DNA from: Oopsacas minuta
Lineage: Eukaryota > Animalia > Porifera
Assembly (NCBI GenBank): GCA_024704765.1
Contig: JAKMXF010000110.1
Coordinates: 248,001 to 312,000 of the forward strand
Direction of reading: 5' to 3'
Length of the DNA stretch: 64,000 nucleotides
Part shown: in pieces, positions 98-64,000 of the stretch
Layout of the letters: every line of letters starts with the position of its first letter
How positions within the stretch are numbered: the first letter of the stretch is position 1
Program-made: the position numbers and the translations under genes
Notes under the pieces: model-generated
Told to the model about the DNA's origin: nothing
Databases searched by the model: none
What the model saw: only the letters and a program-made list of their open reading frames with translations

Positions 98-1985
98 CTG
101 TATTTTAGTAAGAGCAGCACTAGAAGCTTCTCCAGCACCTGATTGTAGGCCCGTTATAGATGTAAATTGACTCTCCAATTCCTTCATACTATTCTCAGCT
201 TTCTGGTTAGCTGCAGAGCATTGAGTCTTAAGCTCATCTTGTGCATCCTTCAACTCTCTAAATTCACGCATCAGCTGCTCCAGCAGACCTAGAGAAATGA
301 TCTAAGGTTCATATTTTGTGGAAAATTGCAAACATCGCAGCTGGAATATAAGTAATCAATTCCAAATATAATTACAAGGATTTTGCGACAAATATAGTAA
401 TTCAAATCTATAAAGATATGAGAAACCGAATTCTAGATGATAGCTATAATATCTTTGAAGAAATCACAATAGTCTAATAAAGAAATATGTCACTATATAT
501 CAATGTAATGTAATCAGTATTAGACAGTATATATCCGTTATAATATATGGAATATGATACAGATACCGATTTGTATTAGAAACGTGAGTAATTAATGTCT
601 AGCCCTACATTAGTTACATATGTGTATATATACACGTATGTTGTCAATGAAAATAATTAAACAAGTGGAATAACGAAATGTACAACGAGAGTTCAACAGT
701 ATTTCTAACTTTTAATGTTCAAAGCAAGATAGAACACTCCTTGATTGGAGTTGGATCGGCTGCTGTTTGCTGTTATGCATGGGGATTGTTAGTATTAATT
801 GTGTTCTATGGACGTGTTATACAAGATAAATGCAGATGTAATAGAACTAGGACAAGGAGGAGAGAGAGGATAGAGAGGAGTAATGTTGAAAAGGCATCTC
901 TACCACCAAGTTATAATGAAATAATCAAATCTGATGAATTACCGAAATACGAAGAAATTATTATAACTCTTACAATGAGGGAATTAGATAATAAAATACA
1001 AGTTTGAATATTACCTGTATATTCTATATACGTATGTGTAAATATATAAATAATGAATATGTCAATAAATATGTACAGTAAACATTCCAATTATAAGTTA
1101 GAACCAAGTTTGAAATATCGAAACTATCGTTATAACGAGAGTTTACACCAGTTTTTACAATGTTAGAAATTGGAAAAGTCATTATGTTTAAGGTTAATTA
1201 ACGCTAAATTAAAGTACCTGCGTTTCCTTTGAGTCCACTCTCAATTCCTCCTATCTTACTCTGTAGAGCTAGATAGTCCATTAGATCTTGTACAGGGGTG
1301 GAACCTTCTCTTGCTCGCTCCAATATGTCATCTAGGGATCTGAATGTTTCTAGTTTACTCTCCATTTCTTGTAATTTGAAATCCAGCTCATCAGCACTCT
1401 TCATTACACCGACAACAGACCGACTATATGTAGCATACAATTATATAATTGTTTCTATACGGATTATGAAAATATCTCTCTAAGAAGTGGAAAATATACA
1501 AAAAATTTCAAATCATCCTTTTGTCGAATATACATTTAAGTTCTACCGAGTTCTACTGTACATTCTATAAGTAAAATTTCACTCATTTTCCGAAATTATC
1601 CGAACTATTCCCCTATATAAATCAATATCTACCTATGTGGCGTAGGTGTAGACCGTGTAACCACTACCTTATCCTCCTCACCCTCTACTACTTCTGAAGT
1701 TACAGCCTTCTCTTTCTTCCGTGTAGTCACTACTTTATCCTTCTCACCCTCTAATATTTCTGGAGTTACAGCCTTCTCTTTCTTCCGTGTAGTCACTACT
1801 TTATCCTTCTCACCCTCTACTACTTCTAGAGTTACAGGCTCCTCTTCCTTAACTTCTAGCTTATTCACGATCTCGTGTAGTATAGTATGGAGATGTTTGA
1901 AGTTTACTTCTCCACTGATAGGCTCCCCTAAACTCATATTGATTAGGAGGTGCATATCTTCAAAAGTCACAGTAGAAGCAGGCAT
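98..1985 (-). CDS. QRICH2/C16orf96 (DUF4795-family)-like coiled-coil protein, 5' part; gene continues beyond the left edge
   Basis: N-terminus MPASTVTFEDMHLLINMSLGEPISGEVNFKHLHTILHEIVNKL resembles the QRICH2/C16orf96 N-terminal motif (..L.DLAIGTP..GAVNF..LH.L). Phase-compatible GT-AG exons 1985-1633, ~1423-1218 and 288-98 encode coiled-coil segments. Confidence 0.7.
678..1007 (+). CDS. Small single-pass membrane protein with PPSY and LPKY (PY) motifs, nested antisense in intron 289-1217 of the QRICH2-like gene
   Basis: 109-aa ATG-initiated ORF: hydrophobic segment (LIGVGSAAVCCYAWGLLVLIVFY), basic juxtamembrane run (RCNRTRTRRRER), then PPSY and LPKY. Confidence 0.6.
   Translation: MYNESSTVFLTFNVQSKIEHSLIGVGSAAVCCYAWGLLVLIVFYGRVIQDKCRCNRTRTRRRERIERSNVEKASLPPSYNEIIKSDELPKYEEIIITLTMRELDNKIQV
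1660..1838 (-). repeat. 66-bp coding tandem repeat (~2.7 copies; 22-aa unit VT.E..EGEKDKVVTTRKKEKA)
   Basis: Near-identical 66-nt units visible in the sequence and in the ORF 1629-1985 translation. Confidence 0.9.
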
Positions 1986-2606
1986 TCTAATTCAAACTTT
2001 ATGATATCTAATGATACAGATAAAATATATTGTGAAAGTTATGAATGAAATACCATATGGTGTAAAAAAACAAGTAAAACGAGATGGAAGTTTGTGTATA
2101 TAGAATCACTGACAAATATTGGGTAATTCAGTAGAGAATAATTTGTCGAAAGAAGGCCCTATTCATAGCTTATACTCTATTGTAATTAGTAAATTCAAAT
2201 ACACTCAAAGTATATAGGAAAAGGCCGAATTGGAACAATATCTTAAAATGGTTTTAAATTACTAGTATACCTGCATAAATGGGTGCCAGGAGGCCAAAAA
2301 TGCTAACCCGTTCCCACTTCTGCCAAATAATGGTGCAGTTCATTTATATGGGGCTAGGAATTCGCTATATTTATTTCACTCCGTTTCCAGAAGTTCCCCG
2401 TATGGAGAGTTTTCACTGTAAACTTAATGAAAATATCGGTTGAGAGAGAAATTGTAGTTGGTGGGAATTTTACGCAAAAACGAACTATGAAGGAGGGACA
2501 ACATTAAAGGAAACATACTGAAGATGTGATATTTATAAAAGATAAAGTAATCTGTAGATAATATATTTATTAAATAAATAATATATAATATGTGTACTTG
2601 TGTTCT

Positions 2607-5600
2607 TTAATCAGATTCAGTATCAGAATCTGAAGTCTCAATAACATCAACTTTTCCTTTCTTCCTCAATACTTGTTTCTTCCATTCTGGCATATTTTCG
2701 AATTTTCGTATTCTAGCTTCAAGTCTAGCTTCTTCTTTAGCCTGCTTCTTTTCATCCTGTTCACGTGAGGCAACTTTCTTCTCGATTAATTTTCGTTTCC
2801 AAAGAGGTACATCTTTCATCTGTTCTTCTTTAAGTCTCTCCCTCTCTTCCTTCTCCCGGATAGCTGCTATTCTCTTGTCCTCTCTGCTCTGAAGGAGCTG
2901 ACGTTTCCAAGGGGGAAGATACTCCACAGGATCTTAAATATGGAATTTTCCAGTAAAAAGAGACGACTGTAACTAGCAATTACTCGTTGATAATTTTATC
3001 ATTATACTGTTGGGGATAATATGTTTTCAGTCAAACGCGTTTTGACCGGAAACAGACTTTGATCCAAGTCCCAACATATCAAAATTTAACCAAGTTGAAT
3101 TAAAGATCCCGATCTGGGACCCATGGACACCTTGGTGGTCCACGGGCGATAAGGGGTGGACAGGATCTCAAAATTTGTATTACATTTTATTGGATCCACA
3201 AAATGTGTCAAAATTCGCTACATTAAGCGCTCTCACCTCCATCTAAATCAGTCTGTGGATTAATACCAGTCTGTACTCTAGCAAATCTAGAAGCATATCT
3301 CTCTTTCTGAGCTTTATATACAGCAGGATCTACTGGTTTCTGTTCTACAGGCTCTGTAGCTAGTCTCCTCTCTGCTAGTTTAGCTCCTAACTCTCCTACT
3401 GCTCTACCCTTCTGAGTCTGTGCTAGTCTGTTCTGTGAAGCTTGTGATACTTTACGTAATCTCTGCTTACTACCTCCTTGTTTTATCTCTGTTAATACGC
3501 TAAGGAAGTCTACTGTATCCTGCTTAGCTCGCTGATCAGGGTGATTTCCGCTCACCTTAGAGATTAAGATATCATCAGGGACGGTGTTTTGACGAATATG
3601 GTCCTCCTATATGCTTATTTGATATTTAACCATGGATGTTGGATTTCGTATATTTTATGTTACATACGTAGAAATCCCCTCTCCAACCAAGTGAGGAGTA
3701 CCTCAAAATGACCTAGAACAACATCCAAGCAGATAACTAAATTTACCATCCATGGTTAAATATCTAATAAGCATATATGGAGATCATTTTCGTCATAATA
3801 ACGGTTTCAAGAGGAAAGGGATTGAACAGTCACCTTTCTAAGATTCAAACCCTTTTTAATCTCAGAGAAAAGAGCCTGTTTCTGGTCGGGATTAGGATCA
3901 AATCTCTTCCTCAATTCATGAGCTGATATCTGTTCAGGAATTTCTATATTTATTTCTATACTATCATCTCCTGATGAGTTATATGTAAGCTCTGCCTCTA
4001 TAAGCTCAGGCGGTATATCAGGAGGGGGAGGAGGGATAAGAGTCCGTAGTTTTGTGAATTCTACAAATGGGTAAATATAAGAAAAGAAATACAGTACTGT
4101 GTTACTATACCTCCGCAAACGAGGTGCCAAAAAGCCGAAAATGCTACCCTCTTTCCCTGATTCTGCCCAATTCCCCGTATGTGTGGAGTTGCATTTGTAT
4201 GGGATTAGGAATTCGCTCAATACGTGCATATTTGACTCCGAAGTTCCCTGTTTGTGGAGGTTACACTGTACCCAAAGGTATTATTATATCAGAAAATAAA
4301 CATTTCCCAAATTTGGCCATACGGTTAAATCAATACCAACTCTGAATAAGCATTCATTAAATGTTACTTACTGCTTTTTATAGGCTTTGATTGCTTCTTG
4401 TCTACAGAAGTGACTGGGTTACTATCTTTGGTATTAACAATGACGTCATCAACATGAGTCATAGGTAAGTCAATACCAAGATTAAGAGCTTGTAGCTCTT
4501 TAAGAGCTATGTCTAGCTCCAGCTGTTGATCTAGTAGTGCTTTCTCTGTGTCCGCCAGAGCTCTGGATTGAGTTACAGGTATCTAGAATAATAGATTAAT
4601 TAGATAAATAATGACGTAATAAATATCTGTGGCTACAAGGTGATCAGAAGTTGGGTCATGTGACAGGTTGAGAAACTCGAAATAATCCATTGGGAGTTAA
4701 TACTATCAACACAAGTATATTGACCTGAGGCTGAGTAAGAGGAGGTTCTTCTACAACAAGATCAGCTAATATATCATCTTGTTGGACAGGTGGAGGTATA
4801 AATACAGGTTTGTCCTCTACAGGATCATCTAACTGTCTACGTCTAGGTCTTCTAACTACAGGAGGCATATTATCATCCTCTCCATCTTCCCAGATCTTCT
4901 TAGGGGGTGGAGGGGGAGGCTTGATTACGTCAGAAGTACGGTGCTCTTCAGGTAGGTCTAGTCTGTTGATTAGCTTCTTAATGCGACGTGCTACTGGCTT
5001 GTCTGGTTCTACTGGGTATGTGAATTCTGGGGGAGGAGAGGAAGCGATATGTTCTATAGCAGGTTCATCTAAATCTGATCCTAATTGGTAAATACACAAT
5101 AAAATGATCATGGTGTATGTAGGATACTATCAATGTAAGGTTGATTATTCGAACAAGTACTGTAGTATAGTCAACTCCGGTTATATCGAAGGAAATGTAC
5201 CGCAATAATCACTTCTATATAATCGACGGAATATTTATCTGTGTTCAATAAAACGGGAGTTGGCTGTAATAATTATCTCTAAAACTATACCTGAAGATAT
5301 ATCTTTGACTATTGGATTCATGACATTCTTAATTTTAGCATTATTAACTTGAACTAAAGATTGTAAACGCTTTGGAACTTGAGTGCCAGTTTCTCCTGAA
5401 TCTTCTAATTCATGAATCTAAAATGAATGTAATAAGAAGATTAATATAGCGAAACGGGGAACTTCTAGAAATGGGTGAAAAATGAATAAAGCAAATTACT
5501 AGTCCCATACAAATGAACCTCCACTAACGGGAATTTGGCAGAACGAAGTAAAAGGACCGCAAGGTAACATATTTTAGTGTTGACTTACTTCAAACTTTCG

Positions 5601-6820
5601 TATAGGTACAGGAGGCTGTAGACTCCCAATCTCAGATGAGGAAGGTATAGATTCTCTTCTAGAATATTCCTTCTGTCCTATAAATCCTAGCGTGTCTGTT
5701 CTTAATCTAGGCTGTTCTGACATAGCATGTCTACTCTCCATTTCTACTCCTTCCATAGCTCCATGTGTTGTCTGTCTAACCGTAAGAGCTTTAGCTCCCT
5801 GATGATGTTGTAATCGAGCTAGAGACTCACTCACCCTCTGGACCTCTGAGGTCATCTTCTCTCTGTCTCGTGTTAGAGATTCAAAGCATATTTGTAATTC
5901 ATCACATATCTCAGCCATACACTAAAAGGAATAATACAATCTGTAAGATAATTCTGAGTTTATATCAGAATATATTAATACAGTCAATTCCAGTTATATC
6001 GCAATACCAGCTTATATTGAAGTAATCATCACCTTCCTTGAGCTTCGATATAACGGGTAGTTGACTGTATTACTGTATCTTGTCATAATTCTAAACTATT
6101 TTGACAAGTGCCAATTTTTCAGGAAAATACAACTCCCTAATTGTAATTACTTTTTTAGAATGCACAATAAGGACGTGACATTGGACCATGGATCCTAGAG
6201 GGTGTAGACATTTTATACCGAGCAGTAATTCATCATCTTCTACAGAATCTTCACAAGAACTGATACTAGATATTTGAGGTATACCGTTAAGTACATATAG
6301 AAGCTTCTTACGTTTGTCTGTAACCTTAAACAATGTAATACTACTTCAAAATATTGTCTTGGTAACTGATTTCCTTATTTATTACCTGCAGCCATGTACC
6401 AGATAACATAAGTATTTTATGTGTAGTAGACCTACACATTAGATAACCATGTCTCTTTCCCCAATCCACGTGCTCTAAGAATTCACTACGAGTACTATAA
6501 GACCTCCACTCAGAGCAGTTAGGAATACTACCTAAGTAGATAACATTCCATTCCTTAGATCCAGTTGCTAGGGAAGGCTCCAATCGTCCCAATGGAGGGT
6601 AGCAGTCGGATGGGTCTCCATAATTAGTTCCCTCTTTCCAGTCTAGTTTCGGGAATCTCAGTTTAGGTTTAGGACGTAGAGGCGTGTCTTTAGATCTCTT
6701 CTTATTGATCATACGAAGGAAGTTGTGTTTACGGTTAGCAGCTCGTTCTGAAGCAGCTTCACTCTTACTACGTGCTCTATCATCTCTGCTACTACTGCTA
6801 GACATCTGGTTAGACTGCAT
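2607..6820 (-). CDS. CCM2-like PTB domain + proline-rich motifs + two WH2 domains + C-terminal PxWK(R/K)xL triple repeat (espin/phostensin-like)
   Basis: Phase-consistent exons 6820-6386, 6324-6151, 5921-5589, 5417-5291, 5080-4725, ~4582-4372, 4060-3834, 3555-3267 (or read-through to stop 3223), 2932-2607. The PTB part (VIYLGS..STRSEFLEHVDWGKR..HVLIVHSKKCMAEICDELQICF) parallels CCM2. WH2 motifs: ALFSEIKKGLNLRKV and VLTEIKQGGSKQRLRKV. Confidence 0.75.
3582..3805. mobile_element. MITE-C (long imperfect TIR containing TATTTAACCATGGATG); second copy ~11020-11215 in opposite orientation, partial copy ~17805-17885
   Basis: Inverted TGACGAA.ATGGTC..TATATGCTTATT..TATTTAACCATGGATG at both ends; internal CTCCTCACTTGGTTGG.GAGGGGATTT shared between copies. 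Confidence 0.7.
4092..4268. mobile_element. MITE-B copy in an intron of the PTB-WH2 gene
   Basis: Ends GTTTGTGGAGGTTACACTG-TA; core is the reverse complement of the 55635-55810 copy. Confidence 0.75.
5168..5266. mobile_element. MITE-A copy (intronic)
   Basis: TAGTCAACTCCGGTTATATCGA ... AACGGGAGTTGGCTG-TA. Confidence 0.75.
5981..6067. mobile_element. MITE-A copy (intronic)
   Basis: TA-CAGTCAATTCCAGTTATATCG ... CTTCGATATAACGGGTAGTTGACTG-TA. Confidence 0.8.
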
Positions 6821-6914
6821 TTAGGATACAGAATACTGTGATATCGCTCTCTGAGCTACTATAAAATAAGATCTTAGTCATAATACTATTTAGAAGGATT
6901 TTCCCAAATTTCCC

Positions 6915-7088
6915 CAGTCAATTCCGGTTATATTTCAAATACGGATCAATCGAAATACTCGCTTATATCGAAGCCTGAGATTGTAGCACAAATATTGTCC
7001 CAAACCAAACCAAGTTACATAAATTTCATTAGTCATATCGAAGTAATTATCGCAGCCCCTTAAGCTTTTATAAAACCGGAATTGACTG
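6915..7088. mobile_element. MITE-A copy (intergenic)
   Basis: CAGTCAATTCCGGTTATAT ... AACCGGAATTGACTG-TA. Confidence 0.75.
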
Positions 7089-7182
7089 TATATATGCAAG
7101 CTAAATATATCGAATAAATCAAATAATGAATATCAAAGAATCATTTCAATATAACAAACAATCATACTAGCATTTCGTGATT

Positions 7183-7545
7183 TCACATTTGACTCTTCTT
7201 TTGCTCTAGAAGTTCTCTAAAATGCTCCCCGCTATCTTTCATTCCCTTCTCAAGTCTCACTTTATTAGCTTGCAGTGTCTCAATTTTCGTAGCAGCATTA
7301 GTTTTCTTGTCTACTAGCATTCTCTGTATTTCCTCTACAGGTTGTAGATAGAACATACGTCCGACGGATTCGTATACGTTAACATCAGCAGGTAGGGACT
7401 TCAGGTCATCTGCGGTTAATTCTGAATATGTAATTACTCTCTGTAGATTTTCTATCTGTGATTCAGCTATGTTAATTTTCTGTACAGATTCTAATACTTT
7501 AGATTGATGGTCTGCTAGAGCCTTGCGGATTTCTTGATCAGTCAT
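7183..7545 (-). CDS. PFDN1: Prefoldin subunit 1 (beta-type), intronless
   Basis: 120-aa ORF: coiled coil, VYESVGRMFYL beta-hairpin, coiled coil; typical of PFDN1. Confidence 0.92.
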   Translation of the reverse strand: MTDQEIRKALADHQSKVLESVQKINIAESQIENLQRVITYSELTADDLKSLPADVNVYESVGRMFYLQPVEEIQRMLVDKKTNAATKIETLQANKVRLEKGMKDSGEHFRELLEQKKSQM

Positions 7546-8332
7546 TACTTGTGGGTAGATAACTTACAAGAATAATTTCAACTAGTAAGACAATTGTTAT
7601 ATCAAGTGATTAGAAATATTTCCGTTTTCTACACACAGGATGCGGCCAAAGACCCATTGACGGAACTATTTTGGCCATGGCCTACCTGTCACGGAAATTT
7701 CGTCCCTGTATATGAGAAATATTCCATGGAATTTTTTATCCTAGATACCACTTCAAAATACCCAAAACTATAAGGAGGAGGTGAAACTTCTGGGTAACAT
7801 CCAGAAGCAATCCTAGTAGAACTGAAACTAACCACAAGACACCTGCACTTGCAACAAAGTTGCATCATGTATGGTGTGCTTAACTTTACAGGAATTAGCT
7901 AGCCTACATCTACAACACCGGCGATTTCTATTGGACACCAAGTTTTAACCCCCTGGAATTTTCAACTTCTGGGGGTCCTATCAAATGTCTCCACAGCTAT
8001 TTCCATTCAGTATTCCCTAAACCCCTTGTATACCAATTTTCATACACATTTTTGTCACATACCCGACCCACAATTAGAAACTATTTATGTTATACGTACC
8101 TGAAAATGATAATTTCTGTTTACAAGCTTTTGAAACACAACATTAATGTTCGTGAGTTTAGCGTCTAATACACAATTTCAGTCCCCAGACAAATTAAGAG
8201 ATTGATGACATTGACACAAAATATCTCAATACGTAATGAATAAATCCTTGTAAATATGTTATTACTACTGCATTTTGCAACTTAGATTTGAACTATATTA
8301 GTATCCTTCTTGCTTGATTTATCATTTTGACA

Positions 8333-54500: not shown

Positions 54501-57500
54501 ACAGATTGTATGCGGTTAGTTAATAATACAGTCAACTCCAGTTATATCGAACACATATATCGAAGTATGAAATTGTACAAATATGGTTCCAAACCGTCAA
54601 AGTAACATATATTCCATCGGTTATATCAAAGTAATTATTGCGGTCCCTTGAGCTTCGATATAATGGGAGTTGACTGTAGTCTACTATCAATGAAATGTAT
54701 TACCTTGCTTACAATAGGTTGCTACTATACTCTACAATGCTTGTTATCTGGAAGAGAATAGTAGTTTTATGCTTGAACATAATCAATCTGTCAGGTAAGT
54801 TCATTATATTATCATGATATGGTGTTGTAATGATATTCTATTATTATTATTTAGATTTATACTGGCTAGTATATCATGTAATAATGTTATACTACAACAC
54901 TTTGCGTGGGATGCACTTACTATTATAGGAGAGAAGGTATGTGTATGCTAATTGATCCTGTGTTATGTGTTATTGGATGTATATAGTTGTCATTAATAAA
55001 ATATGTCATTGCTGACTCATGTCAGAACGCAACTCTTGATAGATGCCTTGAACAAATTGACAACTTCCCAATTCTGTTAAACTCTAATTTCCATTGATTC
55101 TATTTATCCATGGTCCAAAGATATATTTCTCAATATAGCCACACATATCTTATACAACGGATACTGGTTGTAGAACTTGTATTGCTATTCCCAAGGGTAT
55201 TCTTCTAACCGGCATCCATTGCATTACGTACAAGCATTATATGACAATAAACTCTCATAGGTTCCGTTATTTTCCAATGAGTTATGCTCAGAAGAGTTGT
55301 TACAGCTTGTACTAGACTCAATAGTATCAGAAGATAGCTTCATTCTGCTAAGAAACTTAGAAGTTATCAAATGTATAGCAGCAGCAAATATTGATATGGA
55401 TATACCTAAGGAAATTCCTCATTATATTATTAGGCTACTCACTCTTAGTGATGTACAGGTATTTTATGATACGATTAGCTACAAATTTAGAAAATATATT
55501 TTCTGATGTTTTATTATTTGTATAGCTATTACTGAGATGTGTAGAGACTTTATATCAGCTGACAGAGATTAGTACAACTAACTGTAATTATATTATATCA
55601 TCAGTACATGGAATTGGTGGGTATTTATTTGGTACAATGTAACCTCCATAAACGTGGCCTGTAGAAACGGGGACCTTCTGGAAACGGAGTGATAACTAAA
55701 TAGTGCGAATTCGTAGCCCCATACAAATGACTCGCTAAAAACAGGGGTCATGGCAGGAACGAGGTAGCATTTTCGGCGTCCCTAACACCCCGTTTGTTGA
55801 GGATACACTGTATTTATAATGATGATATATTTGTATACATTTATTCCGACAATATCCATAGTCCAATTTAACTGAGTAGAGTGGCAGCTTTTGCCAACCA
55901 TCAATTCTTGTCCATTCTATTATTATCTAGATATTCTCATAACTTGTCTGACACGTGACATAGATGCTCTAGCCTCACAATCAGCTGACAGATTTACTAT
56001 GGTTACAGAAGTACATCGTGATGAGGAGTTAGCTAGAGGAATACCACACAACGTACACTATTCTATTAGGACGTTATGTGATGAGACTAATGCTATAACC
56101 TCAGCTGTGACGTCACAGAATAATATCGTTGAACCACAAGGATTTGGACCTGATGAGCTAGCTAAGAAATGGCTGAGATCATGTTTTGAGAATTGTTCCA
56201 AAGGTACAATTTCTAAGACCCAGTTATACTCAGGGTATCACGCTTATTTGAAGAATATATTCCAGAATCAATCCTCTCTGGGGTTCGGACGTCTTCTAGA
56301 GCATATTAGACATATATTCCCGAAAGCTACGCTTAAAAAGGCAATGGGACCTGATGGAAGATCAAGGTATGACTGTTTATTAGATAATACTGATAGTACC
56401 AACAATAGCATTTGTTCAAGGTTGCAACCGAATATCAGTATTCGGTAGGCTGCTATTCATGTCTACTACTATTCTGTATCAGGTTTAATTATGAGTTAAT
56501 CATCGGCTGAACTAAGCAACTAACTTAATTACATAGTTGGGGCCAATTATAATTCATTAAAAATGAAAAGATTATTATTAATTATTCAAATAATTAATAA
56601 ATGCAACTATGACTTAGCGTGAACTAAATTACATCAATATACAGAATAATAATTTCTTATTATTCTCAGCTGATATGGGTTAGTTGGTTAATATTTATCT
56701 AGACTCCCACAAGGGGTTGAACTTAAGAAACCCCTCCCAGCCCTGATTTAGTCAACAATTTTATTCGTTTTCAAAACCGTTGTCAGAATTGTAAGATATT
56801 CACAATATCTTACAATTTCTTACAAAAGTTTCTTTGGATGAATAATCAAGAATTTTTTGTCCGTAATCAAAATAATAAACATAATTTGCTTTGATATTAA
56901 AATTTTGAAAATAGCACAATGTGGTTAAATCCATTGTCTTAACTAACTCTTCACCATACTTGCTCTCCGAATCTCTGGATTATCCCCGGAAATATTCTAA
57001 GGAGTTGGTAAGTATGCTTAACATAACATGTTTTCCTTTAGTTTCCTGTTCTACTATCTCCGTATCAAGCAACATATTAGTGTAGAAGATATTTCTCTCC
57101 CTTCTGTTGTTTCAACTAATTCCAGTCCATACACTACTCCAATCAAAATCAAGTTAAACCCTCTTGCTAAAATTTCCCCAATACCCCCCCTCATGAATAT
57201 GAATCATCCTTATTCTAACAATAGAATGCTAGCTCCAAAGATAAGAAGTTTAACTGACCCAGCTAAACCAACTATACCGCGAAATTTTGTTATAAAAAAT
57301 ATATTTAATAATACAAATATGAATAAAAATATTTCTCTAAAACAAACTCTCTCACCTCCACTTAAATCCCCTCCTGCACATCCCCTGGTCCAATATAAAC
57401 AGCCTCCTCTCTCCACGTCTCCACCAACACCCTCTGAAACACAGAAATCACTTGAACCCAGTAAACAACTAAATGATCCTATGATATTACAAATACCAAT

Positions 57501-59759
57501 AGAATTCTACCAGAATTCACCTACCTCTCCTGAATTGAAAACAGTAGAACAAAATGGACACTGTAACGACAACTATCTTCCCCCAACAGAACAAGAACCT
57601 TCTCTCCTTAAGAAGAGACCACAACCTCCGTACAGCCCTAACTCTATAATTTCACCTAAGAAACCTACACCAAACACTCCCCCTATTGTTACTAACCACA
57701 CAGATATAATACAGAATGGAGATCTACCTGTTGTAAATGGAGAAGTATATACGTTCAATTGGAATGAAGTTGATATAATTAACTCAGAAAAGAAGGTAAT
57801 TGTTGATACAGAAAAACAGCTGACGACTAATGATATTCCTGATATTATATCGCCAATACACGAAATCAAAGCTAGTCATATAGAGAACAGTGATTACCCC
57901 TTAATTTCAATTTCTCTCTCATCTGCATCTCTAAAACTACCTGAAATTGAACAGAATGCACAAGATTCAGTTTCAACACAAAAGCCTTTATCTCTTACAG
58001 CTGATGCTCCTGCGGTTAATCATACATCTACACCTGTCAATGAGGAGGTAGACTCTCCTCTCAGTGGTAAGAAAGCTAAGAAATCTCATAAAGAGAAACA
58101 GAATGTCACGCCTACATGTCAATGGCAAAACTGCTCCAAGTAAGTCTATGTATTTTGCTCCTATTTGTTTTATATTGATTTGTGTTGTTAGGCCATTTGA
58201 TGAATGGGATGCTCTATTGAAGCATGCTTGTAATGAACACGCTCAAGAAGATTATCCAACTATATGTCTGTGGTTAGGTTGTAAAACACATAGAAATACA
58301 AGGAGTAGACCCTCCCTCATGAGACATTTCCAGGTAACTGTTGTGCTAAATTTCCTTTCAACATTATAGAGTCTACTCCCGTAATATAGAATACGGATAT
58401 ATCGAAATATATACCAGCTTATCGAAGTCTGAAATCGGACAAATATGGTCCCAAACAATCGAAGTAACATATATTTTTTCATCGGTTATACCGAAGTCTT
58501 TTCATATCGAAGTAATTATCGCGATCCCTTGAGCTTCAATATAACTGGAGTTGACTGTGTATAGATATAATTTTTGTAGGTATTTGTTTCTATAATTAAA
58601 TAGGTGAGTCACTGTACTCCTAATCCAATCCAATCCAAAGTAGTCTCTGTAGCACATTTGTTAGACAAGTTAAAACGTATTCCACCACTAGAGGTAAGTA
58701 TGATTTGAAAGTTTAACGTTTCTATATACTCAATTTATATATTTGCTTTTAGCAACATTCTGAAGGAATTTTATCACGCAGTCTACACCTAACAACCGCC
58801 CTAATTCTTCGGAATGTACTACACAAGTGTCCTGAATCTATTAGGTAAGTTCATATACTATCTTATAACAGCAATAATATTGGGCTGGCTATATTGGTTT
58901 ACTTGTCTTTTTCACAGGTAAAATCAAATATTTTATCAATATATCATCCCCTCGTAGAAAGCCCTTTTTCCTATGAATCCCACTTATTCTGAGTATATTA
59001 TAATTAAACTTATGATTATCTTGAGTTTATGTCGCAATGATTGTAACGATAATTTAATATTTACACTTCTTTGTTTAATTGCAATTTAATTACCCTTATA
59101 TGGTTATATATACACCCCTACTATGTTAAAAATGGAAATGATCTGTTAATTTTGGAATATATGGAATATACATTTATAGATATTTTACTATTACTTCCAG
59201 GTGCACTTTGGACTCTTACTCGTATTATTTGACAAATAAATAATCTGCTTTGATTAGGTGAGGAGTTAAATTCCTTCCATTTTTGTCAAATTAGCGGAGG
59301 ATTTCCATCTACCTTGCAATCAGGCAGGTTGCCCAACTTTGAAATATTTAGACCTCTGTATTCTGGCCTGATAAATGAGTCGATCCGCCCAGCTAATTGC
59401 GTTAATTATCTTATATTAATTGATATATTAGAGTTCATTCCCTTTGTCTCTATTAAATATAATTACTAAATCTTTATTACACACGAGGTAGCCCCAATTT
59501 GTCGTAGTCTTCTGTCTATAGACTATCCATTCTGTTCAAAATTGAACGAACAACAACAACAACAGTCAACATTTTTCTATGAAATTACCTTATATCAGTA
59601 TTATTTATTGTAACTCTATTTAATGAATTTTTTTATTTTAGTAATTTTGCGTTACACGAACACACTCTACTAACAGTTGCAACAACAGACTCTCTAGCTG
59701 GCCGATATATTACAGAGATTCTCTCTAAAATTTCAAGTTTCAAACACTCCAATTTTTGA
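51546..59759 (+). CDS. ARID2: ARID2/BAF200 (PBAF subunit): ARID, armadillo-like region, RFX winged helix, two C2H2 fingers
   Basis: ARID exons (FISNLEKHHASLG / NLFSLYHCVRLRGGFHEV / WPLIAKQL), SLLSGYPNEVELAIN, RFX-like AKKWLRSCFE..QLYSGY, CQWQNC..H...H / CLWLGC..HFQ, LTTALILRN, and last exon 59642-59759 (LHEHTLLTVATTDS..ITEILSKI). Confidence 0.88.
53713..53881. mobile_element. MITE-A copy (ARID2 intron)
   Basis: CAGTTATACTCCTGTTATATCGAAGCTCAAGGG ... GATATAACGCGAGTTGGCTG-TA. Confidence 0.8.
54529..54676. mobile_element. MITE-A (pogo/Tc1-mariner-like TIR CAGTCAACTCC(C/A)GTTATATCGA), intact reference copy
   Basis: 148 bp, TA on both flanks, inverted termini; lies in an ARID2 intron. Confidence 0.85.
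55635..55810. mobile_element. MITE-B (TIR CAGTGTAACCTCCACAAAC), ARID2 intron; relatives at ~2263-2418, 4092-4268, ~5445-5570, ~14636-14781
   Basis: Shared core (GAAACGGAGTG..GCGAATTC..CCCCATACAAATG..GGTAGCATTTT) and inverted termini with TA flanks in several copies. Confidence 0.75.
58369..58557. mobile_element. MITE-A copy (ARID2 intron)
   Basis: GAGTCTACTCCCGTAATATAG ... CTTCAATATAACTGGAGTTGACTG. Confidence 0.75.
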
Positions 59760-61735
59760 CAGATTATTTGTTCAATCTTCTACTAACTACATATCACTTG
59801 GTTTGATAGGTAGATACCATCTGTGTATGGAGACTGCTGTTAGCTGGACTGTAGTTATTTGGTTTTTTGACTATTCTCTTCTGAATTGGTAGTATTTGAT
59901 CGCATTATAATTTGTGAATACAGATTTTATGAGCTGCACAGCGAATATAACTAGTGTGTTAATTACAATCTAATGTAGATAGCAGTTCTAATATATTGGA
60001 ATTTTATCATCAAGGAAGTGAAATTCATTGTTCCTTATTTTATACATTATAATCGAAGTCACCACAAATATATCTTTATAACTAATTTATTACCCAAATC
60101 AGTGATAAATTATTCATATTAACTTTCTCAGAAATATTACTTTAATGATTATAATCCTAACTCTTAAGCATGTGGATTATAATCATAAGCATGTAATATA
60201 CGTTTTAAATGCTTAGTAGATGATCATCTGATCGACTTGTCGGCTACAAGTCTGTATCATTATCAGAAACCTATCTTTGAGTTTCTGTGCATCTTCCACA
60301 GCAAATATATGTATAAAAATCTAAAATGTACGAATCCGAGTTCTACTGTACAACACATGGGCTAGGTCACGAAAATCATCTTATTTGGGTATTGCTTGAT
60401 GAAATATTTTGACTATATGATCATCGCATTGACTAACGCTTACACATCATAAATACAGTAGTTTAATATTTCTGCAAATTTATTGTTTATATTCGCATAC
60501 AGCTGGGAATTTTTATCAGAAAAATTGTGCTATTGGATAGTTACTTAAATGGTTATGACACCTGTCTTTAAATCATAATTCAATTTGTTTACTTACGAGG
60601 TTTATTGAGTAAGTTTCTAAGAAATTTGGTTATCTTTTTGCATCTAAGTAATTTACTTGATGTTATTCACATTAAGAAATAATTAATTGAATTTGCATAG
60701 CTGAAAGGAGTTAATTTTATTGTAACTAACTGCTCATTTTCACAAGTATTGCTAATGTAATAATACTTTATATGTACAATTGTTATCAAAAGAATGTATC
60801 TTGGAATTGCCAAATTCAATCGTTCGTTCATTCTTGTACTTTAATACTCATAAATTCAAACTGTGAGTATTAATGTACACAAAATTCTATAATTTTATAT
60901 TGAATATTTTCCTATTAATTGGGTGTTAATTTTGAAAATCAAGAAATCAGGAAATGGATCAAACAAGTCATAGTACCTTAAGCTAGCTAAGTAATATATA
61001 TTTTTATCGTGTAGAGTCACTTGATTCGATTAAAATCACAACTCAATTATTCATTAATTTACCTACAATTACTCTTTCTACAAAACAGGCCTCCTTCTTC
61101 TTATAGTTATGCTAATTAACTGGATAAGAGTATTTTACATTTTAACATACACATGATCTTTAGCTCACCTGCGCATACAATTATACGTAATAATATTTAT
61201 ATGTCTATTTACCTGTATATATTAAATACTTCATATTAACGCCACTACCTTTTAAGATTTATAGACTCCCTGCTAAATATTTATAAAAGCTGTGTATTAT
61301 TTGTATATTAATTAACAATTCACCAATCATATCGCGTGCCTTATATATTACACAGCGTTAAGTTGGATAAATTACTTAACATTAGCAATAGAAATTGTAG
61401 TTTTTGGTAGATTTGAGATTCAAGTTGATTACAATAGAACCGGGATTAAGCGTTCTTCTTCTTTCAAACAAAATATTTAGAGATTATTCCCCATTCATTT
61501 TTCTACTCCCTATTCGGATAAAACTCACTCGGATTTTCCTGATAATCTTTGTTTTCAGATGGTGACGTCTTATCTGAATTTTACTATACTAAATTAAAAT
61601 CCATAAATGGACTTGTAAACGGAAAATGAGCAAATTCTCCTACCTAGGGATACATGATAATTATCTCTATTTGTTTTCGAGAGTCTCATTATACTAATAT
61701 TTACATTAGCTTGTATATACTGAACATAGTTAGTA

Positions 61736-63156
61736 ATGCCACAGAAAAAATCAATTCCTCAACAGTTAAGCAGTCTTATCAAGAACATTGAGAAGACATC
61801 GAATGGACAAGCAAGTGTAGATCTCAAAATGCTTTCTGAGACAGATAACCCAGAATGTATATTCATTCATATTTGTCCTAAAGAAGGCCCTTATAAGTAT
61901 GGAACGTTTGTGTTTGAAATACAGCTTGGAAATGGATACCCAATCAATCCACCAGCTGTCTCTTGTCATACTTCTGTCTATCATCCTAATATTGACTTTG
62001 ATGTAAGTGCTGTAGGTTAGTATTAGTTATCAATTTGGTAATTTGGTAATTCAATGTATCTTCTTCAAAGTTATGGCATCAATATCTGTAACTCCACAAA
62101 CCGTTGCAATGGATTGACCGAAAATATTTTAACAAATTGACCTTTTATCAACAATGTATAATACCTCATAAATTCTAAGGTATGCTTGTCAATGCTAGAC
62201 GAATGGACTGGAGATATGGATCTGGAAGATATCGTTATGGGACTACTATTCTTAATGCAGAATCCACAAATTGATGATCCCCTGAATCTAAATTTTAGAG
62301 GAGATGAAAAGTACCCAGATTTTGTCCGTAAGGTATGTACATAGCTGATGATTTAAAATTTTAATTAATGTATTCTATGAACAGTAAAATGTAAATACTG
62401 CTTACGCAGTATTTACTTATACCTCATTTTTCATAGATTCATATTTTATTCTTACAAGCAATTTACTTTTTGCTTGTACAATTTGATCAGATGTTTGATT
62501 GTAAAATTTCTAAGACAAGTTGTACTTCGGATCATTCTAGGCTCAATTAATTACAATCGCCCGATCTGTAAATTTTTGTCAAAAATTATCCTATTTGTGT
62601 AACAGGAAAATTAGAGATCTAAATTTGAGTTATTAATTGGTTAGTTTGCTTCTGGCTGACTTTCAATCAGATGACTAATAATATGTTTGCTAATCCAAAT
62701 TAAATATATTTCGTCTTGTATAGATTACCGTATGCGCTAACAATGATTTGTCAGTTTCATTATAATAATGATGTCATCACATAATTAATTATAATATTAA
62801 CATTCCAGGTACGCAAGTCCCTAAAGGGACAACTCAAAGATTCATCTGGTCATGTTTTCGAACGAAATTGGCACAAACCAGAGAATTCTACTCCTTCAGA
62901 TTCTGAGAGCGAAGAACTTGTTTCGTTCTCACCTACTTCACTCCCTTCAACTCCAATTATGTTTGACAATTCTGGTGAATATCGTGCTATTGATAGCTCT
63001 AGACACGGACATGATTCAAATAATTTACTGGATTATGATGGAAGAAATGCTGCAACTGTCACGTTAAATACCGCAATAAATATTGCTATCCTTGGAGTGG
63101 TAACTGTGTGTGTCTCAACTTTCATAATTTATAAATGTTTAAAGAAAGGTTTGTAA
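61736..63156 (+). CDS. Ubc12/UBE2M-like E2 conjugating enzyme with Ser/Pro linker and C-terminal transmembrane tail
   Basis: Exons 61736-62002 (or 62011), 62180-62332, 62809-63156, all phase 0. [23 protein letters not shown]...YHPNID; active-site VCLSML; DPLN; FVRKVRKSLKG..FERN parallels UBE2M FEQNVQRSMRG..FER. Ends with [27 protein letters not shown]. Confidence 0.82.
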
Positions 63157-64000
63157 TTGATTTCCAATATCAGAATTGAAATTGGACAATTCAATTTCTT
63201 AGAATTTATTTGATTAGTGAATTTTACAAAATCTCTTACGTTATGTTTTTATTGTTTAATGGAATAAGCTTGTATATATGAAATGTCCAGCCGACCGGCT
63301 GGGATTGCAGTCGTAGTTGGGCTTGTGGATCATTTTCATACCAAAATGCTAGACTTTAATGAAAACTTCTTTTATCACATGATTTATTTGTTGGTTCATG
63401 TTTTCTCTTTAGTGGAGTTTATATAGGGAGATGCCCTAATAAACATAAAATTCCTGCAGTCTACTCTTAGTCGTAGGTATATAAATCCACCTTGTTTTGT
63501 GAAATCTAACATTGTGCACTAATTTCGATCTTTTTGGCCATAACAGGTAGAAATGGTTCCCTTCTGAGCTAATATTACTCGATACGTAATAGATTATTGT
63601 CCATATAGAAAATGATATCATCAGAATTCCAAATATGCTCCTACATTGACTTAATGAACCTCTTACGATATACATAATTATATATTTCTTTTGTGATATT
63701 TAATTACATGCATTGAGGGTATAGTCTAATGATATTCAACATTATTGACATTCTATTCTAGTCAGGTTTGTTGAACTAACGGGAAATACATTTGTTCCAT
63801 TCCATAATTGGATTAAATAAGTACGTACATCATGTTGGAGGGATTAATTAATGAGTAGCTGAACACAATTCTTGAACTTTACCTTATCGCGAAAGTATAA
63901 AATTTCGTGAAACTTTAAATATTTAACCAGCTGGAACAGACCACATGCTTAAACATTTTTCTGTACTCATAATTCTATGAAAGTATATTTCAACATAACA

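Follow-up and report, generated by a model that had tools for sequence, protein, structure and literature searches.

The locus described here raises the question of whether a conjugating enzyme (E2) of the NEDD8 type can be fixed to a membrane. As described, NEDD8 conjugation employs two soluble E2s (UBE2M and UBE2F) and relies on an N-terminal docking peptide; the original prediction, made from the DNA letters of an Oopsacas minuta genomic sequence, proposed instead a tail-anchored enzyme resembling Ubc12/UBE2M. Below, the gene model, the descent of the encoded protein, its C-terminal anchor and its probable cargo are taken in turn. The window is the whole stretch of DNA that was analysed (64,000 nucleotides), and all coordinates are window positions.

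Gene structure and transcripts

Four sequencing runs from one Oopsacas minuta sample contain the stretch. Three behave as genomic DNA, and the fourth (X4), whose kind is unrecorded, is taken as cDNA-like because it carries GT..AG joints and leaves an intron empty; no public run recorded as RNA contains the stretch. X4 depth is ~950 to 7,800 on exon-containing bins and zero within intron 2, and its spliced contigs cross two joints, both GT..AG, from 62002 to 62180 (depth 1821) and from 62332 to 62809 (depth 2061), the second being the junction proposed in the original prediction, which is thereby confirmed. The resulting model is a three-exon gene on the + strand (61736-62002, 62180-62332 and 62809-63156) with its start ATG at 61736 and two GT..AG introns in phase 0, encoding a 255-aa protein. 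The coordinates first proposed for it were right, except that exon 1 ends at 62002 rather than 62003, with intron 1 at 62003-62179. The features of the gene are:

61707-61735, + strand: splice acceptor TAG (61707-61709) and 26-nt 5'UTR, from the X4 loose end at 61708.
61736-62002, + strand: exon 1, residues 1-89, helix 1 to HPNIDFD, from the translation, the Pfam UQ_con match and the joint 62002 to 62180.
61982-61990, + strand: HPN codons in exon 1, from the translation.
62003-62179, + strand: intron 1, 177 nt, GT..AG, X4 joint depth 1821.
62180-62332, + strand: exon 2, residues 90-140, catalytic Cys91 and helices 2-3 including DPLN, from the translation and the Pfam UQ_con match.
62183-62185, + strand: codon of the catalytic Cys91, from the translation.
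62333-62808, + strand: intron 2, 476 nt, GT..AG, X4 joint depth 2061, depth 0 in bins 62405-62725.
62809-62874, + strand: first part of exon 3, residues 141-162, Ubc12-type C-terminal extension, from alignment to the UBE2M segment NVQRSMRGG.
62875-63057, + strand: acidic, Ser/Pro-rich disordered linker, residues 163-223, with pLDDT 42-58 in the model of an ortholog and no Pfam match.
63058-63132, + strand: predicted transmembrane (TM) helix, residues 224-248, from Kyte-Doolittle hydropathy and the helix in the ortholog model.
63133-63156, + strand: basic tail KCLKKGL, net charge +3, then the TAA stop, from the translation.
63183-63220, + strand: two 3'UTR blocks (63183-63196 and 63209-63220), identical in the transcript of another glass sponge.

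The spliced model equals NCBI protein P0261 letter for letter and is thus already annotated publicly; the protein sequence is known, as is its automatic name, "NEDD8-conjugating enzyme Ubc12-like [Oopsacas minuta]", which is silent on the anchor. A 916-nt transcript contig from the other glass sponge (L001; Logan, run SRR29297749) encodes a 252-aa ortholog, P0246, with the same junctions as in Oopsacas, between FD and VCLSML and between VRK and VRKSLKG. Intron 1 also has a second donor (62003-62015), 13 nt past the main site and in minor use, at a depth of 103 versus 1821; in this form the frame is shifted and a stop is reached after 123 codons, and such splicing is probably non-productive.

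The end of the gene needs closer attention, as a mis-modelled last exon would leave the TM-coding segment missing from transcripts. X4 contigs do break at 63068-63097, within the TM-coding part, and the X4 contig that goes on has a mean depth of only 114 over 4240 nt. However, the two X4 contigs share 30 nt, the overlap that a branch in a de Bruijn graph would produce, and DNA run X2 breaks at the same spot owing to adapter. Moreover, X4 holds no alternative joint out of exon 3, the ortholog transcript spans the whole CDS including the anchor and 3'UTR, and the public annotation is identical to the model. With the spliced contigs, the transcript of the ortholog and the public annotation all in agreement, a mis-modelled last exon was rejected, and we regard it as scarcely credible: the TM-coding exon is used in mRNA, neither cut off before the anchor nor replaced by another last exon.

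Two neighbouring features deserve mention. Downstream of the stop codon, the 3'UTR blocks TGGACAATTCAATT (63183-63196) and TTTGATTAGTGA (63209-63220) are identical in L001:833-916 despite saturated synonymous sites in the CDS, and may be a regulatory element. Upstream, at 55891-58369 on the + strand, long ORFs belong to a separate gene for a Pro/Ser-rich protein whose Cys/His-rich end resembles zinc fingers.

Descent and active site of the UBC domain

The exon translations contain the motifs I.P.EG.Y..G.F.F, HPNID, DPLN and SLKG...FER, and after these NEDD8-E2-like UBC motifs come the Ser/Pro linker, the hydrophobic helix and the KCLKKGL end, all as originally described. Pfam UQ_con matches the whole protein at 4.4e-22, exon 1 alone at 2.7e-13 and exon 2 alone at 8.6e-6. 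Searched against the PDB with phmmer, the exact protein matches human UBE2M (6.3e-22), yeast Ubc12 (5.3e-19), the next E2 type (9.5e-13) and UBE2F (1.8e-12), and single-exon searches give human UBE2M for exon 1 (1.4e-14) and yeast Ubc12 for exon 2 (1.9e-5). Fold results refer to an AlphaFold2 model of the ortholog P0246 (core 88% identical), used in place of the exact Oopsacas protein; the model has pLDDT 93-98 over residues 1-160, is disordered at 165-222 and ends in a helix at 225-251. Its top five Foldseek matches are all Ubc12, at ~30% identity, and UBE2J chains are missing from the 60 best PDB sequence matches and from the 50 best fold matches. The segment after helix 4, SLKG...FER, aligns with SMRGG...FER of UBE2M, so that a Ubc12-type C-terminal extension is present. 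In the ortholog model this extension includes two bridge residues, 150 and 156, with pLDDT high to ~160; UBE2M has a two-stranded sheet at its C-terminal extension, and UBE2F ends in a helix instead (review, PMC8028724).

A search with exon 1 against 1.84 billion representative proteins finds as best matches not canonical UBE2M but proteins of ~230-450 aa in which the UBC domain starts at residue 1-10 and is followed by a long tail. A profile of 30 of these family proteins retrieves at least 306 proteins at E <= 1e-10. Those with a species name, all automatically called "Ubc12-like", belong to the demosponge Amphimedon queenslandica, to three hemichordates (Ptychodera, Glandiceps and Saccoglossus) and to the coral Oculina patagonica, and the family range as known comprises these five species and glass sponges. 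The Oopsacas protein is a glass-sponge member of a family in several animal phyla, not a sponge-specific protein. Behind helix 1 the members conserve an S.S.GQA motif, located on the surface where E2s bind E1 and E3, and the C-terminal extension of the Oopsacas protein aligns with the family consensus NVRxSLRGxxVDGVxFERN. In three other assemblies the family genes are single uninterrupted ORFs (L002, 3001-3717; L003, 1001-1864; L005, 1001-1978). No named vertebrate, fly or worm protein is among the 120 family matches listed, and the standard model organisms are not known to have a member of the family. An ESM Atlas search with the Amphimedon member returned generic E2 clusters only, below the trust threshold.

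A careful IQ-TREE analysis of 88 UBC domains (LG+C20 PMSF; UBE2J sequences not included) unites Ubc12, UBE2F and the family in one clade versus the other E2s (support 100/99). The family itself has support of 99/97; UBE2F diverges first, and the family then arises within the Ubc12 sequences on a long stem of 0.51 + 0.68 changes per column. The window protein clusters with P0246 (100/99) and P0071 (99/98). UBE2F is represented in the tree by P0256, confirmed as UBE2F at 5e-48 by PDB comparison; P0125, a candidate UBE2F seed, was rejected after it proved to be a protist Ubc12-like fragment. The gene product is kin to the NEDD8 E2s, nearest to Ubc12/UBE2M. A kinship with UBE2J/Ubc6 was rejected on sequence ranking, on fold ranking and on the tree, the last built without UBE2J sequences; descent from Ubc12/UBE2M, as originally proposed, agrees with the best sequence and fold matches and with the position of the protein inside the NEDD8-E2 clade of that same tree.

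The N-terminal docking peptide of NEDD8 E2s (~26 residues, binding the UBA3 groove and DCN1) is absent from the protein, whose ORF opens at helix 1. An in-frame TAG (61727-61729) lies 9 nt upstream of the ATG and behind the splice acceptor, an in-frame TGA also lies between acceptor and ATG, and the ortholog transcript L001 has an in-frame TGA upstream of its own ATG. Given these upstream stops and the acceptor, the protein starts at UBC helix 1 and the 26-residue peptide is truly absent, which bears out the earlier impression that no UBA3-docking extension was apparent. Nearly all full-domain family members likewise have only 0-2 residues before the UBC domain, and hence no docking peptide. 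This peptide is specific to NEDD8 E2s, in which it makes one half of a bipartite E1 contact (review, PMC8028724). At the acceptor, the X4 contig has a loose end at 61708: the preceding 18 letters, TCTTCATAAAAAACTTAC, are absent from the window and are joined to the TAG acceptor 26 nt before the start codon. This foreign 18-letter stretch looks like a spliced leader.

The protein has the active-site residues of a UBC-fold E2, with HPN at residues 83-85 and the catalytic Cys at residue 91. HPN is invariant in two family alignments, A1 (30 family members) and A2 (62 sequences including six canonical Ubc12), and the catalytic Cys, likewise unchanged throughout A1, is conserved to at least 90% in A2. 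Over the collected protein set, the Asn of HPN and the Cys are spaced 5 to 30 residues apart, with peaks at 8, 11 and 13, which is unusually free for an E2 active-site loop. In both glass sponges the spacing is 6, versus the usual 8 in canonical E2s, giving the shortest loop in the set save that of P0220 (5), and could, judging by this shortening, alter catalysis. A loop two residues shorter than in nearly all E2s, together with a spacing that varies from 5 to 30, would suit a non-catalytic or regulatory E2-like protein that is tethered to a membrane and binds and sequesters an E1, an E3 or NEDD8 with no transfer. Such a role is at odds with the invariant HPN, with the invariant or nearly invariant catalytic Cys, with the strong purifying selection on the core and with the loop itself, which is modelled in the ortholog at pLDDT 80-93. 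Given this conservation a pseudo-enzyme seems unlikely, and we regard sequestration with no transfer as improbable.

The predicted C-terminal anchor and its candidate membranes

Exon 3 encodes a 29-residue uncharged stretch with a best 19-mer Kyte-Doolittle value of 2.42 (residues 229-247) and a best 20-mer GRAVY of 2.26. It forms the single hydropathy peak of the protein, at residues 224-248, the rest of the profile staying <0.7, and a 7-residue tail follows the helix. The hydropathy profile thus predicts a single TM helix close to the C-terminus, followed by a short luminal tail, and shows no signal peptide at the N-terminus; since the protein has no other hydrophobic region, the topology is tail-anchored. 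The one C-terminal TM helix of the original prediction is therefore recovered both by hydropathy (2.42) and as helix 225-251 of the ortholog model.

The ortholog P0246 has an anchor of the same type (...STFVIYKCIKKFL), with KCIKKFL at its C-terminal end. A comparison of the two glass sponges shows saturation at synonymous sites (pS about 0.8), with identities of 88% in the UBC core (dN 0.10), 49% in the linker (dN 0.45) and 64% in the TM helix plus tail (dN 0.29). The substitutions in the TM helix preserve hydrophobicity, and the anchor is kept by purifying selection. In the linker, residues 169-196 (~62893-62976) hold an acidic Ser cluster, TPSDSESE, and the stretch SLPSTPxMFDxS, both retained in the two glass sponges and perhaps serving as short linear motifs or phosphorylation sites.

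True anchoring appears to be confined to part of the family. A C-terminal 19-mer with a Kyte-Doolittle value of at least 1.6 (TM-grade) is present in only 25 of 132 members, and true membrane insertion is therefore not general in the family. On the tree a TM-grade helix occurs in 8 of 60 rows and needs 4 changes; carried by this minority, the true anchor is a trait of certain lineages, namely the glass sponges, P0071, the Amphimedon group and a few others. More widely shared are an acidic linker (-0.17 charge per residue), a greater hydrophobicity or amphipathicity of the last 45 residues than of the linker (121 of 142 members) and a terminal Arg (92 of 142), these counts being descriptive, as the sequences are mutually related and not independent tests. 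Many members without a TM-grade helix (among them P0169-P0190, P0023 and P0025) have an amphipathic helix and then a conserved ESSVD(P)VR or SSSVDVR terminus. The Amphimedon-containing subgroup (P0225, P0003, P0004, P0018, P0019, P0027, P0039) has a linker motif, D-E/D-A-T-G-Q, that is missing from the glass-sponge proteins.

The makeup of the family bears on whether the C-terminal helix might be a protein-protein or amphipathic surface-binding helix instead of an anchor, leaving the protein peripheral or soluble. This would be in keeping with the merely amphipathic or weakly hydrophobic C-terminal helix of most members, often followed by ESSVD(P)VR, and with one further glass-sponge contig (P0262), which lacks the stop and extends 35 residues past the helix. 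The Oopsacas stretch, however, with its 29 uncharged residues, Kyte-Doolittle value of 2.42, flanking Lys and position 7 residues from the end, has textbook tail-anchor features and is kept in P0246 and P0071, so that a non-anchor helix strikes us as a poor prospect for this protein. As to P0262 itself (ENA contig of 7109 nt, the same as P0001), it is a third glass-sponge-like sequence with W in place of the stop, and its extension past the anchor could be real read-through, a variant or an error.

Which membrane an anchored protein would enter is a separate matter. The original prediction took the tail for a moderately hydrophobic anchor of the mitochondrial or peroxisomal type, which is not borne out: a 20-mer GRAVY of 2.26 with a +3 tail is highly hydrophobic. 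The anchors of P0246 and P0071 have GRAVY values of 1.99 and 2.08, each of the three tails carrying a charge of +2 to +3, and the Amphimedon anchor is weaker, at 1.56. In mammalian cells, a TM segment with a GRAVY of 2.4 counts as "highly hydrophobic" and is directed to the ER except where the tail carries a very high charge, a moderately hydrophobic TM segment with a tail of ~+2.9 goes to mitochondria, and higher hydrophobicity overrides tail charge (Costello et al., 2017; PMC5450235). Under these rules the combination of 2.26 and +3 is ambiguous, and the ER is thus as compatible as mitochondria or peroxisomes; from hydropathy and charge, the ER would be slightly more likely than the mitochondrial outer membrane or the peroxisome.

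Proposed function and comparison with known systems

The gene product is an E2 descended from Ubc12 that is expressed, under selection, equipped for catalysis and fitted with a C-terminal membrane anchor. As to its function, we favour, at somewhat short of an even chance, a tail-anchored E2 that represents an old animal Ubc12 paralogue without docking peptide, is still loaded with NEDD8 and works at an organelle surface with a membrane RING partner, without DCN1. The origin of this Ubc12 paralogue family would have involved the loss of the docking peptide for UBA3 and DCN1 and the acquisition of a long tail, with a hydrophobic or amphipathic helix at its end. In the present-day enzyme, a catalytically competent UBC domain of Ubc12 descent would face the cytosol, and an acidic disordered tether of ~60 residues would join it to the single C-terminal TM helix with its short basic end. 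The NEDD8 E1 would load the enzyme through a contact between the E2 core and the E1 ubiquitin-fold domain, and transfer would take place at the organelle surface with a membrane-bound RING partner, DCN1 not being needed. The suggestion that the anchored E2 conjugates NEDD8 comes solely from its descent.

The cargo may have been switched instead. In that case UBA1 (or UBA6) would charge the enzyme with ubiquitin, and a Ubc12 duplicate would have become a membrane-bound ubiquitin E2, a functional analogue of Ubc6/UBE2J, which we consider tenable though not probable. Such a switch would be in line with the family-wide loss of the NEDD8-specific docking peptide, with the long family stem and with the new conserved motif after helix 1; the long stem and the place of S.S.GQA on the E1/E3-binding face together suggest that the partner may have changed. 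Furthermore, the tail-anchored E2s characterised so far are, to our knowledge, ubiquitin E2s of the Ubc6/UBE2J type. On the other hand, Ubc12 is the closest match to the core, both by fold and by a margin of 6-9 orders of magnitude in E-value, and the Ubc12-type C-terminal extension is kept. Even when truncated, a Ubc12 core can be charged by NAE (APPBP1-UBA3), which means that an E2 without the docking peptide need not have changed its E1.

Taken further, the preferred reading with NEDD8 as cargo would mean that early animals had a third NEDD8 E2, membrane-tethered, independent of DCN1 and neddylating at an organelle surface, which survives in sponges, cnidarians, hemichordates and probably other invertebrates. 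We rate this wider account as rather unlikely; if it is true, the targets would be, for example, a membrane-bound cullin/RING or non-cullin substrates, and the enzyme would have gone unnoticed because the standard model organisms lack the family. A conserved, expressed Ubc12 paralogue without docking peptide and with a gained membrane anchor raises the questions of whether neddylation is localised to organelles in early-branching animals, how the E2 core chooses its E1 once the docking peptide is gone, and what vertebrates lost. The original prediction had called such a system possibly undescribed. This holds for the literature, in which a full-text search found no paper on a membrane-anchored Ubc12-like E2 or on the "Ubc12-like" animal family, and does not hold for the protein, which is already in NCBI (P0261) and sits in a family of at least 306; what is new, by that search, is the combination of a NEDD8-type E2 core with a tail-anchored E2 architecture.

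Among known systems, Ubc12/UBE2M is the best match of the window protein in sequence and in fold, and the two share a clade (100/99), HPN and the catalytic Cys, the DPLN helix and the S(L/M)xG...FER extension. The window protein differs from Ubc12/UBE2M in having no docking peptide, in its ~95 extra C-terminal residues with a TM helix, in an Asn-to-Cys loop 2 residues shorter and in an identity of ~30%. UBE2F belongs to the same NEDD8-E2 clade but is more distant (1.8e-12 versus 6.3e-22 for UBE2M), branches before the family, and is soluble with a docking peptide. With the "Ubc12-like" animal family, the protein shares the helix-1 start, S.S.GQA, the acidic linker, the C-terminal hydrophobic or amphipathic helix and the clade (99/97). 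A TM-grade helix sets the glass-sponge proteins, their sister P0071 and the Amphimedon group apart from most family members, and the Oopsacas gene has two introns, whereas the members examined elsewhere are single-exon. In Ubc6, UBE2J1 and UBE2J2, which are tail-anchored ubiquitin E2s of the ER, a flexible linker likewise joins a cytosolic UBC domain to a single C-terminal TM anchor, but the UBC domain of the window protein is of another lineage, with no UBE2J among its best 60 PDB or best 50 fold matches. The likeness to Ubc6/UBE2J is one of convergent architecture, and the tail is not homologous.
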